Assembly: GCA_021613535.1 (NCBI GenBank)
Contig: CP075494.1
Location: 16,616,001 to 16,680,000 of the forward strand
DNA: 64,000 nt
Reading direction: 5' to 3'
Source of the DNA: Adineta vaga
Lineage: Eukaryota; Animalia; Rotifera
The notes under the pieces are model-generated. The model ran no database searches. It was not told where the DNA came from and saw only the letters and a program-made list of their open reading frames with translations. The position numbers were made by a program, and so were the translations under genes. Positions 381-54,353 of this stretch are shown here, in pieces. Numbering within the stretch: position 1 is the first letter of the stretch; each line of letters begins with the position of its first letter.

Positions 381-1406
381 TATAACTATACTATTATATC
401 TGCTTGTTCTTTTAAATCAACAGTTCAACAACGCGAGTAAATGAATGAAGTGCTGATTTTGTACCAATGAAAGTCCTTCAAGAGAAACATAAGAACCACT
501 GAGTATATAACTTTTTGAACAGTAAATAATGTTGATTTAGCATCGTGAGAGTGTGAGAGACACGGTCTCTCTTTTATTACTTGAAAATTCGTTCTATGTT
601 CTACTACGTTGTTTTTTTTTTCATTTATTGATTTTCTTGTTCTATTGTTAAAAAAGTCATGAGAATAATAATAATGTAAATACATAAAATAAATTAACAT
701 TTATTGATATTCATATTGAAAAGAATAAGACTATTTTTAATTATAAGATAGAGATTCAGTATAATGTACTTATTGTTTCTCATTTACATATTATATTTAA
801 TTGAATAATCATAGATATATGTAAGAACATTAATATAAGTTGCTTTGTTCATTAAAAGATATATCAAAATAAAGAATAATCATAGAAATGATTAAAGTTC
901 ATCGACATCGTTCACATAATCGAACAAGAAAACAAAGAAAAGTAAGAAAAACAATTGAAAATATTTAAATTTAGTCTAAATAATTCAAAGGGATCTACAC
1001 ATGTTATACATATTCTTTTAAAACCTGTTGATTCTACTTCTCAAATTTCTAATTCCAATAAGACAATACATCAGGTATATCTTCGAAATACTATCCATTG
1101 ATCTAATCTAATATATAAGTTTCAAGTAAAAAATATGATTTCTATTTGAAAACATTTAGAAAATGAAAAATAAATTATCTAATATCAATACGTCGCAGCA
1201 ATTATCGTCGATCTCTCAACATGAGCCAATTACAAAACATACGGTTCCAATCAATTCAAATGAACTGATGGTATCACAAAAAGAAATATCGACCTTTTCG
1301 GTGAGATTTATTAGATCATTTAGATTTATATAAACTCATCTTCTATATATTAATGTAGGAAATCTATAGAGATGTTCATTCTTATTCAACAAAATCAATC
1401 GTATCT

Positions 1407-2741
1407 ATGTTTCCGAAGAAAATAAAACCATTTCATAAACAATTATTCACGTCTAATCGATATGATTATAACATTAAACAGGAAAATATAATTGAAAATA
1501 CTCACAAAATTAAGAAAAAAGAACGACATTATATTTGCCGTAAATTTAGACTGGGATATTCTCTTTGTTGTTGTTGGACAGCTATTTTGACAGCTTTATT
1601 CTTACTTGGTTGTCTTGCAGCTATACTTACTTATTTTCTGACACGACAAAAAGTCATTACAACAACAACGACAACGACGACAACAACATCCGTAACGACA
1701 ACAACTTCAAGTAAAAAATTCTATTTTATATTTATCAAAAAATCTCTGATATTTTAGTACAGTTTCTGAGAAAAGCATATCGTAGAGCTTCTATTAATCA
1801 AAATTTGTCAATTCATTTGAAGATACGATATATGAAATAAATGAAAGATTGTTATATAGAATGTCAGTTAATTAAATCAATATAGTCCAAAGATACTTTT
1901 TGTATGTTTAAGTCTAACTTGCGATAAAAGAAAAAACAAATCTCTTTCATAGTAATGTTAAGAAATTTAAGTTTCACAGAATATGATACAATTTTTAATT
2001 TATTTAGCAACAACATCCACTACTAGTACATCGACTTGTAAGTTTTACATTGAAATTGAATAGAATAATTTTGTGACCTTTTGAATAGCATCAACATCGA
2101 CTAGCAGTACAACTAGCACATGTAAGTTATTTCCATTTTCTTCTTTTTGAAAATATCATTTTTTTTCTTTTCTTATTCGAAGCAACAACTTCAACTAGTA
2201 AGTATTCGTTGTTCTCGATACTTGTATTAATTAATTTGTTTTAGCAACTACCACAGCAGGTCCATGTGCACCTGTTAATATTGGTTCTATGTCCACTCTA
2301 CTTTCAGCTACGTCTGGTGATACATCAGCGTTCAAATGTCAAGTTTATTCATGGACACCAGCTGCATCCGGTACTGTCACTCTTGCATTTCAATTCCGCC
2401 ATGATCCTGGTCTATGGTATCTTGATGATGTTTCAGTTTTTGATGGAACAAATGAAAAAATTGTTAATGGAGATTTTGAAACAGGTTCATTATCACCTCA
2501 ATGGACAAAATCAGCACCGAATGGATCATGCACATGTTGTATAACTGCTAGAGTTGATAATATTACTGGAGGTGTAGTGCCTAAAAGTGGTTCTCAATAT
2601 GTCATCGATGGTAGTAATAACTGTATTAGTCAAATCAGTCAATCATTTACAGTTACTCTTGGTCAAGTTTATACTATTAGTTTTTGGTTACGAGATGGAG
2701 GAGGAATTGGTCAAAAAGTCTTCATTGCTACTATTTCATGA
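1407..2741 (+). CDS. Type II membrane protein: TM, Ser/Thr stalk, C-terminal carbohydrate-binding (galactose-binding-like) domain; 5 exons
   Basis: Exons 1407-1710, 2008-2037, 2089-2121, 2183-2197, 2245-2741, all GT-AG and phase 1, join in frame. TM segment AILTALFLLGCLAAILTYFL; WYLDDVSV and IVNGDFETG motifs. Confidence 0.75.
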
Positions 2742-2970
2742 TTTTGATTCTTGACTAGTTTCTTTTAAAATCAACTTTTCTCATAAAAGTATTCGAATAG
2801 TTATTATGTCTTTTTACATATTGATAAGAACAATTTATTACATGTAGGTTTTCTTCGAAAACTGTCAAAACGACTTTTTTATGACAATATACTCTTATCT
2901 CTGAATGTATGTCTGTATAAATACGTTTTACTACAATGAAAAAACGATATATTTTCTCAAGTAGAAAGAG

Positions 2971-4224
2971 ATGACTTGCGATTCATGTTTTTATCGTTCA
3001 CTCTTTTATTTTCATGCTATTATCGCTGTATTTGAGTGTATAGCAACTATGACACTCTTTATACTCGTTGCTGGTTCTATACCTGAATTATTTTTCAAAA
3101 ATGATCATCCTAATAATGAAAGTTGGGAATTAATTAGTGTTGAAACTCGACTTATTATTGTAATTCTGTTCTTTGTTGGTGCAATTCGATCAGTAATCGT
3201 ATGCGTTTTTCTTTTCATCTTATTATTTGTGTTCTGTTCGTTTCCTTGTCTTCTTTGCTTTAAATTTTGTCATCAACCGTTATTTCAATTACTTAAAGCT
3301 AAAGCAACACATCGATTATTCTCATTCAATTGTAATTGTCCATGTTATCGTGCACGTCCTAAGCAACGCTTTCAACTACAACTTGTATTTCTCGTCCTAG
3401 TTTCTCTTGTTCGTATCGCAACTATTATATTCTGTGTGGTCATACCACATCATATAACAACGAAAAGTCTTGCTGTAGTTATTGGTATTTCCTTCTTTTT
3501 TCTTTTCATCAATTCTCTCTTTGATTATTATCACTATCGTGTATGGTGGCACTATAAACCCAAATTTGTTCGACTTAAACAACCGATCATATTGCCAAAG
3601 AGAACCTTGTCGACTAAGCATAAACGATATTTACCTTATCCATTATTAGGTAATATGCGTACAGGTAAATCTGGGGACAAACTGTGTACAAAAGAACCGT
3701 GTACCAATCGCGAACTTGAACATATTTTAATATTTCATCTAGATGATTATCAACCTCAGCCGCGTTGGTCAGAACTAAAACGACTAGATCCTTCAGCTGA
3801 CACGTACATTGGTTTTCATCGTACAAGTGCTCATGCTGCTGCTGCTATTGCACACAGCGATTTTCGTCGTTCGGTTACACCACCACAGATGCTTGGCTTT
3901 GGAATCTATTTTGCACGTTCAATCGAAAAAACTGTTGGAAAAGCACGTTTCGAAGGTGCAATTATAGCTGCTGAAATTCGTATGGGTAATGTAAAGGAAG
4001 TCGTTTTTAATGAACTAAATACTGTGCGAAATACTGATAATTGGCATCCTGAATTTGATACAGTCTATTATAATCATAAGAACGATCAGCGAGATGAATT
4101 TTGTATTTACGATGAAAAACAGATTCGTAAATGGATTATTGTAATTGATCATATACACGATGAGAAATTTTCAGACTATGGTATGGACTCAGAATTTGAT
4201 GATACAAAATGTTATTGTATCTAA
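2971..4224 (+). CDS. Multi-TM protein with C-terminal PARP-like ADP-ribosyltransferase domain (Gig2-like)
   Basis: About 4 hydrophobic helices in the N-terminal half; H-Y-E type motifs GFHRT, MLGFGIYFARS and RDEFCIYD; intronless, 417 aa. Confidence 0.75.
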   Translation: MTCDSCFYRSLFYFHAIIAVFECIATMTLFILVAGSIPELFFKNDHPNNESWELISVETRLIIVILFFVGAIRSVIVCVFLFILLFVFCSFPCLLCFKFCHQPLFQLLKAKATHRLFSFNCNCPCYRARPKQRFQLQLVFLVLVSLVRIATIIFCVVIPHHITTKSLAVVIGISFFFLFINSLFDYYHYRVWWHYKPKFVRLKQPIILPKRTLSTKHKRYLPYPLLGNMRTGKSGDKLCTKEPCTNRELEHILIFHLDDYQPQPRWSELKRLDPSADTYIGFHRTSAHAAAAIAHSDFRRSVTPPQMLGFGIYFARSIEKTVGKARFEGAIIAAEIRMGNVKEVVFNELNTVRNTDNWHPEFDTVYYNHKNDQRDEFCIYDEKQIRKWIIVIDHIHDEKFSDYGMDSEFDDTKCYCI

Positions 4225-45773: not shown

Positions 45774-46881
45774 ATGTCAAGTTTGAATACATCGGATGAC
45801 TTACTACGATGTCCAATCTCCATGGAATTATTTCGTGATCCAGTCTTAGCACCAGATGGTCATACATATGAAAGACAAGCGATCGAAGTATGGATTCGAA
45901 ATAATGGCACAAGTCCTATAACTCGACAACCATTGTCCATTGAACAATTATATCCAAATCGTACAGTGAAAGAACTTGTTGATATATTTGAAGCATCGTT
46001 ACGACAACGAAATTATCAATTTACATTAGATGTCGATGTGAAGAAAAAGAAACGACGTCCTTTATTTCAAACTTTTGGTAAAAAAATTTATGCTGCTGAG
46101 TGGATTTTAGATAAAAATGATCGACCAGAAATAATTATATTGAAAATTGATAGTACTCGAGCAAAAAAAGAAGCATCTTTTTACGTAGATTTAAGTCGTC
46201 ATCCGCATATTATTCGAACATTTGGTTTTGTTTATGATAAAAGAAATCCTGAGCAACAAGACAATTCAATTTTACTTTTACAAGAATATGCACCAGAAGG
46301 AAGTTTATATGAATTATTACAAGAAAGAACAACAATTCCTGATGAAAAGATTCTGATAGAAATGTTTTTGCAAATTATTGAAGCAATGATATGTTTATCG
46401 TCGAATCATGTTGTTCATGGTGATTTAGCTTGTCGAAATGTTTTAGTCTTTCGTTTCGATGAAAATCAACCGGAAAGAAATATTGTTAAAATCACTGATT
46501 TTGGTCTTAGTCGATATAGTCAATTATATTCGACGACACCCGGTGCAGCTATAACTGTGCTAAACATAGTTCCTATTCGATATGCAGCACCAGAAATATT
46601 TTCATCGGATTCATCAGAGAATTATACAGAAAAATCTGACGTATATTCAATGGGTGTATTGATGTGGGAAGCATATTCGGGAGGTTTAATACCGTGGTTA
46701 AGTATTGATAATGATAATGATGTTATTCGACGAGTTAGAAATGGTGATATACTATCTCAACCATCGAATTGTAGTCAACCATTCTGGTCGATCATTACGA
46801 AAACTTGGTCCATACTTCCGAATGATCGACCAACATTTAGCGAATTAAAACATCTTCTAGCCGCGCAATACTATCATTCAG
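45774..46881 (+). CDS. U-box plus tyrosine-kinase-type domain (first exon of a probably longer gene)
   Basis: CPISMELFRDPV..DGHTYERQAI..SPITR (U-box); HGDLACRN, DFG, PIRYAAPE, SDVYSMG; splice donor CAG|GTATTG at 46881. Confidence 0.88.
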
Positions 46882-47760
46882 GTATTGATTATGTTCATTT
46901 TGATTCATATTTTAAAAGAATAAAAATTCAAAAAGTATAGGATTAGATTAATTTACTATAGTTGCTGTTTAAATAATAGATTTTTCACTAAAAAATGGAT
47001 TTGAACGTTACAATATGAACGTTGAATGTGACATTAACCAAATCGAACGAACAAAAACTTCACAAACACAGGAAGAGCAATACAGAAAGCCTACTGAAGA
47101 ATGTATACTACTCGAACAAGTACATTTTTCTTTTACAAAATATGCATTGTCTTGGTTTTTTTGTTTTATTCACATTTGTAGTTAAAACAAGAAGAACCAG
47201 GATCAACCATTCAAAGAAGTAAGTCGCTCACTATACATCTTGGACGATAAAATGTATGCGATTTGGTTAATAATTTGTAGTTATTCTACAAATTAAGTTC
47301 AAAGATATAACTTACATTGTACTGTGAGGCCTGATTAGGTTATACTTTTATGAAATATCTCCTAAGTATAGATTAGGAACGTCACACACACAAAATAAAA
47401 AAAAACATATCAGTTCTATATCAATTCTTTAGATAGACAACGAACTCGTGTACGGCATCGAATAATAAAAAGAGAGGTTTCTGACAGATCAAAGTGTTAT
47501 TATATTAAAATCGTTACAATTATCATGTTTGTCCTGGCTGTTACTGCGGTTTTTGTTGTGCTAGTTGGTCGTAAGTGGTAGTGAAACACTTTTGTTAAAT
47601 AGGGTGGGTGTACAGAAAATATTTTAGGTTCTTCGAGTCGTACTAATGAAGTTAAGAATCCTGGAAAGCCAGGTAAGTCAATCAGTATAATTGATGATAT
47701 CAAAAATTATAGTACTATGAAATTTAATGTTAACAAAATGTTATTTCTCTTCATTTACAG

Positions 47761-50245: not shown

Positions 50246-50887
50246 CCTCTATATGGGTCGATTATTTTTAATTTTTGGAATTATTGTTATATTATCAATA
50301 GGATTATATACATGGATAAAACGATATTTAATGAAAGAACATTTATTTATATTCATTCAACAGAGAAAGAATTGATTTTTATCAGAAGATGTTTGATGTA
50401 CATTAAAACTGAAAAAAAGAACAATTCCAAACTCACATTCATATTTTTTTTAAGGATCTGTAATTAACTATATCGGTTTTAACATTCCTAAATAGATCAA
50501 CAAATATTGTGATAATATCACAGTGATATTAATATGAAAATATGTCCAGTCAAACTAAGTGAATTTTCTGAGATAAGTTACAGAGCTGCCATAGGACGTT
50601 TCATTCTACATACTATTGATCTTATCACGTCCGATCTTTATAAAAATATTGAAGATAACTTTCCTTCCTTTTTCATAAGTATGCTATTTTTGACATATTT
50701 AATATAATAATTAAACAATGGTATATTATTTTCTTTGACATTCTTTTTTTCATTCATCAAATCAAATAGTTAAATATCCATCATGATAAAAGAATTTGAG
50801 AATGAGCGTTGTTTTTTTGTTTTCTCTCATCCACTCCCATGGAATGCGGGTCTAACAATCTAGAGTGAAGCGGAATCGAGCAACATT

Positions 50888-52744
50888 TTAATTGTTCCAC
50901 AAACCAACATTATTTATATAGTTTTCAGTGAGGTTTTTCAAACCGCTACTTTCATCATAGATTAGGCACATCAATCCCTTATGAAAGTTTTCCATAAAAT
51001 CGCAGGCTTCTTTATACGTGAGGTTATCATTTGCTTCATTGACTGCCAAACCCTTCAGTTCATCACGGTTGTTCATTAGGAGTTTTAGAAAGTTGTCGTA
51101 GGAACCAATAATAGTTTTAGCCATTTCTTTTAGATGACTATGACGCACGAGTACATCAGCAACGATTTCCAACGGTGGCTTTTGAAACATAGATTTCATG
51201 TGTTCAATTACTTTCTTGAGATTTTCATTATTTCTACCATTAAAAAGTTGTTTACGTTGGTCCACAGTGAAATTAGTATGAAAAGAGAAGCACACTAGAC
51301 AACTAGACACATAGAGAAGTTTTCTTGACATCAATAATTTGATAAAACGAATCACAGAGCCTTCTCCTTGACGACTCCAATCTTTATATTGGGTGCTCAC
51401 ATGCATGGTGTTCCAGAATCGTGTAAAGTCGCGAAGGAGAAATTTTGGTACATGATCCTCAAAACTATTCCACAAACTATGGTCTTCATACAGATAGCGA
51501 CTTAGAAGGTTGTCTAATACTCTTTCATAGGCTTCTTTATTGCCCACTACGTGTGCTTCGATTAAAAGAGCCATTCGACGAGCGAGGTTATTATTTGTAT
51601 CTAGCTCATTGCCGATGTTGTGAACCAAACTTGTACTAAAAACCATTACATCGAAGATTCCCTCTCGACCAACGGACATCTTAGCAACTTTGTTTATAAT
51701 TTTTTGAATATCTGAAAAGCATTTCTGATGCCTATAGTCTACTTGACTATCAATTAACAAAAACCAATCGATATCACTACCATCGGTATATTCATTGCGA
51801 GCGAGAGATCCTAATATGATAATACTCATATCGTTAGAATTACAATGCGCACATAGCTTGTCTGTAAGTTCCCGTTGAGTACCAGCTGCCAATTTACGCG
51901 CTTTATTAATATATTCCCATGAAGTACGAAGCTTCTTTTCTAGTTTTCGTATACTGGAAGAATCATCTTCCATAGTTTCGGCTTGTGACTCATGGGCTTC
52001 ACTTTGGTCCTAAAATAAAATCAGTTTTAGATGGTTATATGACAAATATATTTGAGACTTAAACGTTCGCTGCATTGGAAACGAGATCATCTACATTGAA
52101 TTGTCACGATCTTGAGGGTGTAGGGTGGGTGAAATTTCACCCAACTACCCATTCCAACTCCCGTTGACCTTCTCTGGGACCTAAGCTACCACTGATGAAA
52201 GTTTGGTGACTCTAGTTATACCAGGGACTGAATGCATAGCGGACAGGCAGAAAAACATTCTTTTTTAGATATGTATAGATATATAGAAGATATTTCAGAG
52301 TACTCGGAATGGATCATTTCTTCTCCAAAATTTGTAGTTGATTTGAATACTCTTTTCTTATAAGAAGTCTTTCATATAAACGTAGCGCCAGATAAGACAG
52401 AAAAACGATTGATCTCAATCATACAATTATCACTGATTAAGAAATGTTCCATTTCTAATTGGTGTCAGTGTTTGACGAATAGAATACTTTTTACACGACA
52501 TCTAGCTGAAACTCACCGCATTGATAGGTTCACCTGTGCTAGCGGCATTGTTGTCATAGGATGTCATGCCACTGGCACTGTGCGACACTGAGTCAGTTGT
52601 GGGTGAACTAGTAGATAAAATTCCCGAAGTCGATTGTTGCGTGGGAATTAAGCCGACTATATCCACAATGTTTGGATCAAAACCAGAATTCTTTTCAGAC
52701 CTTTCATCAACTGCTTCTCTAACATGAGGTTCCATATTAGCCAT
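50888..52744 (-). CDS. Bacterial-type Pol-beta-superfamily nucleotidyltransferase, about 449 aa, 2 coding exons
   Basis: Exons 52744-52517 and 52009-50888 joined in phase 0 (GTGAGT...TTTTAG). Motifs IILGSLAR.E...SDIDW, RRMALLIE, PKFLLRDFTRFWNTM, IKLLMSRKLLY. Confidence 0.8.
52112..52162. repeat. Telomere-like palindrome copy (intronic)
   Basis: TTGAGGGTGTAGGG followed by the perfect palindrome TGGGTGAAATTTCACCCA. Confidence 0.75.
52165..52279 (-). mobile_element. Helitron 5'-end remnant
   Basis: Reverse complement reads ATCTATACATATCTAAAAAAGAATGTTTTTCTGCCTGTCCGCTA, similar to the head of the Helitron at 60328. Confidence 0.5.
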
Positions 52745-53148
52745 GAGTATTAGAGAATGTGAGCAACCCCTTTAGCCAATGCTTGCCAAGCGAGTGTTCT
52801 GAAAGACAAAATATTTAAAGAAAATTACAATAATCTCTCAAATAGGTGCACTGACGTACGAATTAAGATTGAATAAAAGCTGAATAATTAGTATATAGGA
52901 TATTTTAGTACCGGATTCGCTCAGGTGCTACTTCCAGCTAGGATCACATTGATTTCAAATAGAACTCGACGAGCTATACTTATCTCCACCATCACGCTCA
53001 TCTATGAAATCCCCTCAAAAACGAAATTTATCCTTAAACGACAGTAGTTCCAAATTTAGTTCGATCAGGTCCACTATTCTCACATATTAGTATGAAAGAT
53101 TGAGGAATTTATTGCTGAGAAATGTGCAAACTACTAATGAACGTCGAC

Positions 53149-54353
53149 TTAAACGCGCGTAACGCGATGACATATTGGCGAGAATTTTAGCATCTTTTCT
53201 CATAGACTATAATGTCTTTCAAAATTTTCTTTTTTTTCTCTAGAATATGTACCTCATAGTCATCTATCATTTCTAAAAAAATCAGCTCGATTGAATGCAC
53301 CATTCGGAATTTTTTGATAAAATACATGTCATAACACGATGATGAAAAACGGACAAAATTCTAATAGTGCTATGATTCTTTGCTATTTTTCTGCGAATTT
53401 ATGATACATCGAAAGAGACATTCATTTCATGTTTTGCAGCTCACATCTTGATATCTTTATAGTTAAATCCAGTTTCCGAAATAGACACTCTATTCTTATG
53501 CAAAATCGATTTTATCGATGTAACACGGTAATGCTAGTTTTCGAACCAGAGCTTTCACTACCTATTTTAGAAGCCTCTCCTGCTACATAAAGTTAGGATA
53601 GAATACCTTCTGTCATAATTATAGAGAATAAACGTTAAATTTGGTAGATTTAGTCATATCAAGTCAAAAATCACTCGTAGCAAATTAGACAGGATATCTT
53701 TCCTATCCCGATACTTACATACATGCATAGACTTCACCCACTCTCATATGTATCCATTTTTATTCACCGCACATTCACCATTATTGTCATACTGCATATC
53801 GACACAAATCGTCGCTTACTACCATTCAAGTCAAATCCTGTCAAATCCAAATCTAGGATTTGACTGGAATTGGATTTGTTGCACCCCTAATTGAAAAGCA
53901 AGGACAAAATGCAAAACACGTCATCACGTTACGAAAAAATTTTGCAAAGTATAACCTTTCGAAAATAAAAATATATTCATCAGATAGCTCATAGAAAATT
54001 AGCTGTAGGCTTATATTTTGAGAAGAAAACTGTTGGATCTTATTGGTGAAAAATAAACAATACTGACTTTTCGTAACGCGATGATGATATAAATAGAGTA
54101 GTATTGGTGAAGCTCGCCTATCAGAACAATAATGAATAAAAAACTCAATGGTTTCCGAAAACATATACCTATTATAACAGTCTTAAATTATTCTAATCAA
54201 CTTATTATATACCGAGCTGTTCCAGTAAAATAATTGAATTGATTAGCGAGTTAAACATTGAGTTTTTTATAAGGTATTAATGACCTCAATGAGAACTTCT
54301 CAAAGTAAGGAGTTCGATATCACATCACCAGAGGTGACGCGTTATGCGTTTAA
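53149..54353. mobile_element. Possible TTAA-flanked non-autonomous DNA transposon (decayed, with nested fragments)
   Basis: TTAA-ACGCGCGTAACGCG at the left and CGCGTTATGCGT-TTAA at the right form imperfect TIRs; the TAAC(G/A)CGATGA motif recurs inside. Confidence 0.35.

Follow-up and report, generated by a model that had tools for sequence, protein, structure and literature searches.

Does the bdelloid rotifer Adineta vaga make an immune nucleotide signal with an enzyme taken from bacteria, or does that enzyme do something else? The question is raised by a 449-amino-acid (aa) gene on the minus strand of a 64,000-nucleotide stretch of A. vaga DNA (C5:16616001-16680000; referred to here as the window, and the source of all positions given for the gene), with its coding sequence (CDS) at 52744..50888. 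An original prediction, made from the DNA alone, had described the gene as a horizontally acquired nucleotidyltransferase and had tentatively linked it to HalB, the signal-making enzyme of the bacterial Hailong system. We reproduced the gene model exactly, and it is identical to the NCBI protein "hypothetical protein I4U23_027257 [Adineta vaga]." The host contig measures 16,930,519 bases in an assembly of 100.8 Mb and six contigs, and the gene lies about 250 kb from a chromosome end. With moderate confidence, we read it as the domesticated A component of the bacterial module PDC-M70, derived from an acidobacterium of the Bryobacterales, without its B partner, and encoding a nucleotidyltransferase of the GlnE/DrrA type that has been re-targeted.

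Family and origin of the enzyme

In all database searches the two coding exons were searched separately. The translation of exon 2 contains every motif that had been quoted for it (GSLARNEYTDGSDID, LVHNIGNELDTNNNLARRMALLIE, PKFLLRDFTRFWNTM, IKLLMSRKL, and STQYK), and it matches the PADLOC profile PDC-M70A (PDLC04778) at full length (positions 1 to 352 of 355; E value of 3.5e-96; 320.6 bits), which bears out the earlier view that this is a nucleotidyltransferase of bacterial type. A large protein library held 1281 relatives at E≤1e-3 and 152 at E≤1e-30; most are 345 to 370 aa long, and the best non-self relative is 44% identical. A scan of the whole rotifer genome with the PDC-M70A profile and a protein search both returned this same single locus, and the gene is therefore single copy.

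Pfam recognized only the generic core (NTP_transf_2; 25.1 bits at exon 2 residues 60 to 110), and sequence and profile searches of the PDB gave only core matches of about 22 bits, which are nondiscriminating; in the sequence search the signature G-S-x-A-R-x-E...S-D-[IL]-D aligned with DrrA. Below threshold, Pfam reported DUF294 (20.4 bits versus a cutoff of 21), SidM_N (18.2 versus 27), and Polbeta, while NCBIfam gave 14 to 16 bits for GlnD, HalB, and MntA, far below their cutoffs (for GlnD, 14.3 versus 631). The DUF294, SidM_N, and GlnD signals may be read as weak echoes that favor a GlnE/DrrA-type identity; curated cutoffs were reached neither for DUF294, SidM_N, or GlnE in Pfam nor for GlnD in NCBIfam. 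When cGAS/CD-NTase and OAS relationships were tested, no family of the CD-NTase or Mab-21 type appeared at E≤1 in Pfam or PADLOC. No CBASS or other cyclase models were matched in PADLOC, and no aminoglycoside nucleotidyltransferase family was matched at a meaningful score in Pfam or NCBIfam.

The best genome matches, at 40 to 45% identity, are Acidobacteriota genomes from soil and peat metagenomes (Bryobacterales, Bryobacteraceae, and Solibacter). In a quick tree the rotifer protein stood beside a metagenomic protein, P0004, whose relatives are P0173 and P0174. All three are encoded on short contigs with AT-rich flanks and a guanine-plus-cytosine (GC) content of 34 to 38%. These flanks match dispersed A. 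vaga repeats at 70 to 89% identity, one of them with 77 matches, many near chromosome ends. The contigs carry polyadenylation-like signals, and in two of them (L089 and L092) an acceptor-like TTTCAG precedes a shared ED[DN] motif by 12 to 13 codons, at the same place as in A. vaga. A control search with a neighboring U-box kinase gene showed that bdelloid DNA is common in metagenome collections.

In a careful tree (LG+C20; 50 rows; unrooted), the four eukaryote-like sequences formed one group (ultrafast bootstrap, 94; Shimodaira-Hasegawa-like approximate likelihood ratio test [SH-aLRT], 96) that nests at 100/99 in a 22-row set in which every named member belongs to the Bryobacterales or Solibacteraceae. 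With a length of about 1.0 to 1.1, the A. vaga branch exceeds all others. An artifact of base composition was considered and rejected, as seven AT-rich bacterial sequences fall outside the rotifer group. We take the transfer to have run from bacteria to the rotifer because of this nesting, because the operon is universal in bacteria (see below), and because the best matches include no other eukaryotic relatives. The horizontal acquisition that had been proposed is thus real and well supported, and probably old. In our reading, a bdelloid ancestor received the gene once, from a Bryobacterales-like donor; divergence came next, probably with losses. A literature search on the transfer of nucleotidyltransferases into bdelloids returned nothing relevant, and the family was not found described in rotifers.

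The flank with the 77 matches (L090:1-690) represents a dispersed repeat family with at least that many matches in A. vaga (e.g., C1:17361467-17361900, C3:294066-294754, and C5:1837293-1837981), and it lies on an environmental contig bearing a sister copy of the gene. This family could mark bdelloid DNA in metagenomes.

The PDC-M70 module, the predicted fold, and changed residues

PDC-M70 is catalogued as a candidate defense system on computational grounds, and its anti-phage role remains a computational candidate because no publication mentioning PDC-M70 was found in a literature search. The proposal that the enzyme comes from a bacterial defense operon therefore stands in the limited sense that its family is so catalogued, and goes no further than that cataloguing. 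A first scan of genome contigs with a single protein query gave no matches; a second scan, with an alignment as the query, confirmed at least 570 relatives among the candidate stretches, and the best 80 loci were examined. In every one of the 80, PDC-M70B lies directly downstream of A on the same strand, with its start codon at the A stop and its end some 700 to 800 bases after A. Likewise, on the contigs of the closest metagenomic homologs, a gene for a 234- to 237-aa protein starts at or overlaps the stop codon of the nucleotidyltransferase gene, and these proteins are PDC-M70B (E values of 1e-88 to 1e-100). B is the obligate partner of A in bacteria.

The B protein is predicted to be a metal-dependent TIM barrel of the xylose-isomerase/endonuclease IV (Endo IV) type. 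Pfam AP_endonuc_2 matches 14 of 41 members; an AlphaFold (AF2) model with a predicted local distance difference test (pLDDT) score of 93.5 has its best Foldseek matches in UlaE, in tagatose and psicose epimerases, and in endonuclease IV (E values of 1e-9 to 1e-7); and in B the invariant columns include His, Asp, and Glu, as is typical of metal sites. The genes that flank A-B in bacteria are heterogeneous and mostly housekeeping, with about 10 of 122 flanking open reading frames (ORFs) matching defense models. Some A-B loci are clear defense islands, and across the flanks of the bacterial loci there was no conserved third gene beside A-B and no consistent defense-island context. At one locus (L008:7001-8499), the A gene is split into ORFs of 398 aa and 103 aa, the latter corresponding to profile positions 253 to 355, with B intact, which suggests a frameshifted copy; this split gene adjoins prophage terminase genes and helicases.

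In the rotifer, the PDC-M70B profile (PDLC04779) found no candidate in the whole genome and nothing at E≤0.1 in 46 to 56 kb of the window. No remnant of B lies downstream of the rotifer gene or in the three orphan contigs that carry the sister copies, even with 1.9 kb of downstream sequence. The rotifer carries the A component only, transferred or kept without B. Both the A and the B profile match in Bacteroides thetaiotaomicron, a culturable bacterium amenable to genetics that served as a control genome.

The AF2 model of the rotifer enzyme, built from a 92-sequence alignment (pLDDT, 94.2; predicted TM-score [pTM], 0.92), comprises two parts. A Pol-beta-type nucleotidyltransferase core, delimited by Pfam NTP_transf_2 and the AF2 strands and helices, spans 51530..51838 on the minus strand (exon 2 residues about 58 to 160; exon 2 numbering is used for all residues below) and contains G67-S68 and D79-x-D81 (51775..51767). 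An all-helical C-terminal domain follows at 50906..51454 (minus strand; residues about 186 to 368), as seen in the AF2 model and with VIA-align and Foldseek. In an exhaustive VIA-align comparison, core and helical domain superpose on DrrA (Z score of 15.1), the GlnE N-domain (13.5), and the GlnE adenylylation (C-) domain (12.9), with 250 to 277 residues aligned (250 for DrrA) at only 11 to 15% identity. The next matches are ANT(3'')(9) (Z score of 6.4) and AAD(9) (5.6), and HalB follows at rank 29 (3.8). The top three Foldseek matches are also DrrA and two GlnE domains, each with a probability of 1.00, while HalB appears with an E value of 0.03 and a TM-score of 0.20. The protein is thus predicted to have the two-domain fold of the GlnE/DrrA adenylyltransferases.

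GlnE, GlnD, and DrrA transfer AMP or UMP from a nucleoside triphosphate (NTP) to a tyrosine of glutamine synthetase, PII, or Rab1. With the N-terminal AMPylation domain of DrrA/SidM from Legionella and the Escherichia coli GlnE domains (PDB 6yx5, 1v4a, and 3k7d), its best structural matches, the rotifer protein shares the arrangement of core plus helical domain, and the catalytic G-[SG]...D-x-D motif of GlnE/GlnD/DrrA-type enzymes is intact in it. GlnE and GlnD are built of several domains and regulate nitrogen metabolism, and DrrA, a secreted effector, has guanine nucleotide exchange factor (GEF) and lipid-binding domains; these additional parts are absent from the rotifer protein.

The four copies (A. 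vaga, P0004, P0173, and P0174) are 41 to 61% identical, and all are open frames of about 350 codons. Pairwise ratios of nonsynonymous to synonymous substitution rates (dN/dS) are 0.28 to 0.63 where dS is not saturated, and they lie below 1 in every pair. G67, S68, R71, S78, D79, and D81 show no variation across 92 sequences, and these six residues, together with E73, D87, D137, and E151, are kept in the four copies except for the conservative changes E73D in P0004 and E151D in P0174. This pattern argues that the catalytic core stayed under selection. Among 94 family-conserved columns, the four copies keep 70 to 81, versus 81 to 94 in sampled bacterial rows. Column counts further single out the helix of residues 188 to 209 (PKFLLRDFTRFWNTMHVSTQYK; 51383..51448, minus strand) as near-invariant in bacteria and eroded in the rotifer. 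Within this helix (P188, N193, R197, W199, R200, T201, and V204), each copy has different replacements, and D205, an Asp in all 103 bacterial rows, is Ser in two of the four copies and Asn and Gly in the other two; the changes in A. vaga are N193R, R200N, and D205S. That the copies replaced the same bacterially fixed residues in different ways suggests a constraint that was lifted when B disappeared. In sum, the rotifer protein resembles bacterial PDC-M70A in its full-length profile match, its length class of about 355 aa, its conserved motifs, and its nesting in the bacterial family tree; it differs in having no PDC-M70B beside it, in its introns, in an extension of about 88 aa that is specific to the eukaryotic gene, and in the replacement of N193, R200, and D205.

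Gene structure and surroundings

Splicing was examined by aligning one 2,501-base stretch to contigs from four sequencing runs, three RNA-like and one DNA. The contigs of the three RNA-like runs, which come from three studies, omit exactly 52010..52516 (joint 52009/52517). The omitted 507 bases have CT..AC ends on the plus strand and equal the predicted GT..AG intron, and the contigs of the DNA-like run (X12) hold the locus unspliced. The assignment of the runs to RNA is a guess, and contigs speak to the existence of the spliced form, not to its level, its strand, or the ends of the transcript. Contigs of runs X1, X5, and X6 leave the stretch at 52798, and their loose ends map uniquely to 53719-53748, which places an intron in the 5' untranslated region (UTR), as the original prediction had suspected. 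Taken together with the eukaryotic neighbors described below, these contigs support its view that the gene is integrated and apparently transcribed.

The gene, all on the minus strand, is laid out as follows. A 5' UTR exon at 53719..53973 has an exact 3' end at 53719 and a minimum 5' extent, at least 255 nucleotides (nt) being present in one contig. The 5' UTR intron at 52799..53718 (GT..AG; 920 nt) has the donor GTAAGT and the acceptor TTTCAG. The exon with the start codon (52517..52798) has its ATG at 52744 and contributes 76 codons (52744..52517). It is followed by the phase 0 coding intron at 52516..52010 (507 nt; GTGAGT...TTTTAG) and by the last exon at 50668..52009, which encodes the 373 codons of the PDC-M70A-type nucleotidyltransferase. 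The CDS runs to 50891 with a stop codon at 50890..50888, and the 3' UTR extends to about 50668, the 3' end of the RNA-like contigs.

The 76 residues of the first coding exon form a Ser/Thr-rich, low-complexity N-terminal extension that, from its translation and the homolog alignment, has no bacterial counterpart; bacterial homologs start at about residue 13 to 20 of exon 2. No Pfam family was detected in the extension, which is disordered and without a detectable family. Runs of two studies carry a 9-nt in-frame deletion allele at 52618 and amino acid polymorphisms clustered at 52649-52710 (K18E, E17K, and V12A), and exon 2 shows two synonymous and two nonsynonymous differences. Evolution is much faster in the low-complexity exon than in the exon of the enzyme. 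The coding intron contains a high-copy repeat at 52048-52355 (peak, 52196-52279), over which the summed contig depth in the DNA run climbs from about 100 to values of 1400 to 3300, with several variant contigs; the probable source is a transposable element, a small fragment of which inserted here.

Eukaryotic genes flank the locus on both sides, a U-box kinase gene and a gene for an NHL-repeat protein. The former is a single-exon U-box plus protein-kinase gene at 45774-46937 on the plus strand and belongs to a very large bdelloid family, with 567 database proteins at E≤1e-30 from Rotaria, Adineta, Didymodactylos, and many metagenome contigs. The GC content of the nucleotidyltransferase gene is 37%, versus 56 to 62% in the donor clade. 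Channel-like genes had been reported nearby; the neighboring ORFs give no channel family in Pfam. An AT-rich 103-aa ORF at 53853-54164 (minus strand) has a faint match to an ionotropic-receptor ligand-binding domain (E value of 0.002, below the cutoff); it overlaps the 5' UTR exon and is probably spurious and not a gene.

Competing explanations and meaning

A trivial explanation would be that the locus is bacterial contamination or an assembly artifact, as might be suspected from closest relatives that are all bacterial. We give this next to no chance and reject it, since two GT-AG introns are removed in the RNA-like contigs, the GC content is far from that of the donor clade, eukaryotic genes stand on both sides on a 16.9-Mb contig, and in a DNA run from 2013 the locus is contiguous with its flanks. 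The more specific proposal was that of a HalB-like or other signal-making defense nucleotidyltransferase, whose tyrosine-primed oligo-dA or other messenger would gate a channel-like effector encoded nearby. Hailong has two components: the DNA-gated channel HalA and the nucleotidyltransferase HalB, of about 220 to 237 aa, which makes tyrosine-primed poly-dA (PMC13434031). The two enzymes do share a Pol-beta superfamily core with G-S...D-x-D (E values of 0.008 in NCBIfam and 0.03 in Foldseek, the latter against PDB 9dbh), and both belong to bacterial two-gene operons that are listed or studied as anti-phage, PDC-M70 being listed among candidate defense systems; there is also a weak protein-atlas lead to class I adenylate cyclases (score, 0.82). 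We nonetheless reject membership in HalB: the NCBIfam model NF051895 scores 15.7 bits versus a cutoff of 190 and covers 32 core residues only, the fold match (Z score of 3.8, rank 29) compares with 15.1 for DrrA, and the rotifer family, at about 355 aa (exon 2, 373 aa), has a large helical domain. Nor is there a HalA, the best genome match to NF051894 reaching 32 bits versus a cutoff of 250 and lying on another chromosome; the partner in bacteria is the TIM-barrel PDC-M70B, absent from the rotifer, and not an ion channel. The tyrosine after the RFW motif (in STQYK), to which the original prediction had drawn attention, is Tyr208; it precedes an invariant Lys and shows fair conservation, with Tyr in 86 of 103 bacterial rows, but it is Gln in the sister copy P0004, and nothing suggests priming. 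The profile score, the fold and size, and the partner, the three testable features of HalB, all differ from what is found here, and the specific immune-signaling mechanism is without support. With no channel family in the neighboring ORFs and no CBASS or cyclase models in PADLOC, we judge this explanation very unlikely, and a signal synthase of any kind quite improbable.

Two further explanations accept the bacterial origin and dispute the present function. The enzyme could be a nucleotidyltransferase of a small molecule or nucleic acid (a metabolite, an antibiotic-like compound, a sugar phosphate, or a nucleic acid end), of the aminoglycoside nucleotidyltransferase (ANT) type, kept for detoxification or metabolism. 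ANT(3'')(9) and AAD(9), the next-best folds, have the same two-domain plan, the bacterial neighbors of the A-B module are mostly housekeeping, and many genes that bdelloids have acquired function in metabolism or detoxification; the gap between Z scores of 13 to 15 for DrrA and GlnE and 6.4 for ANT(3'')(9) favors the protein-modifying group instead, as does the absence of a meaningful match to ANT families in Pfam and NCBIfam. We regard this explanation as possible, though well short of probable. The gene might, alternatively, be a transcribed relic that lost its ancestral function with B and is now decaying or serves a noncatalytic role. Such a fate would fit the replacement of N193, R200, and D205, the change of roughly a quarter of the conserved columns, a dN/dS of up to 0.63 in one pair, the long A. 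vaga branch, the absence of a second genome copy, and the absence of an annotated ortholog in other sequenced bdelloids. It is unlikely in view of the four diverged copies, which keep their frames and the whole catalytic core with dN/dS below 1 throughout, and of the spliced form in runs of three studies; in addition, the acceptor-like site at the same position in three copies indicates long retention as a spliced gene.

We therefore return to a re-targeted A component of PDC-M70. On this reading, a bdelloid lineage obtained the gene from a Bryobacterales acidobacterium and domesticated it. The A component was transferred or retained without B, and the gene has gained spliceosomal introns, a 5' UTR exon, and the disordered N-terminal extension. 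The enzyme would transfer a nucleoside monophosphate, probably AMP, from an NTP to an acceptor hydroxyl, most probably that of a protein side chain, in the manner of GlnE, GlnD, and DrrA; a free oligonucleotide signal is probably not the product. Helix 188-209 may once have served the interaction with B or with the substrate of B, and the loss of B would have freed it from this constraint. From that release we infer a changed target for the rotifer enzyme, one that is specific to the host. Judged by the retained catalytic residues, the protein is likely still an active nucleotidyltransferase; that it modifies proteins as an enzyme of the AMPylase type is a narrower claim, to which we give a little less than an even chance. 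An immune role, in the rotifer or in the bacterial system, is unproven.

Several observations weigh against this explanation. The predicted fold match gives architecture, not activity or substrate, and the two-domain plan is shared by aminoglycoside nucleotidyltransferases (Z score of 6.4); because of that shared plan, and because B resembles sugar-phosphate epimerases as closely as it does Endo IV, a small-molecule acceptor must be taken seriously as an alternative. The DUF294 and SidM_N scores fall short of their curated cutoffs. Of 75 family-conserved columns, about 20 are changed in the rotifer protein, among them N193 and D205, which are invariant in bacteria, and R200, which is nearly so, and these changes could mean loss of the ancestral activity. 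That the runs with the spliced form are RNA is a guess; a processed DNA copy is an unlikely source of that form because the genome holds a single copy. Lastly, the annotated proteomes of Rotaria, A. ricciae, A. steineri, and Didymodactylos, whose presence in the database was confirmed by the U-box kinase control, contain no annotated ortholog, and so the distribution of the gene among bdelloids is patchy or under-annotated.

With other bacterial genes of bdelloids, the gene shares its origin, its place near a chromosome end, its gained introns, its host-like base composition, and its apparent transcription. It differs from them in that one half of a two-gene module was retained, and it thus offers a natural experiment in which half of a strictly paired bacterial module survives alone in a eukaryote. 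A bolder version, which we hold to be doubtful, is that a GlnE/DrrA-type protein nucleotidyltransferase from a candidate anti-phage module has long persisted in several bdelloid lineages and, once its TIM-barrel partner was gone, took a protein of the host or of a pathogen as its new target; it would then be the first of this AMPylase class to work in an animal, possibly in defense against stress or pathogens. To the debate over the share of eukaryotic immunity that goes back to bacterial defense genes, the locus adds one more case, with a defense role unproven on both sides. Animals AMPylate proteins with Fic-domain (FICD) and SelO-type enzymes, and we know of no GlnE/DrrA-type enzyme described in an animal. 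If active, the rotifer enzyme would add a third class to animal protein nucleotidylylation. For the bacterial family, the constraint lost at D205 and along helix 188-209 points to residues that probably serve the partnership with B, and it provides a handle on the uncharacterized PDC-M70 module.

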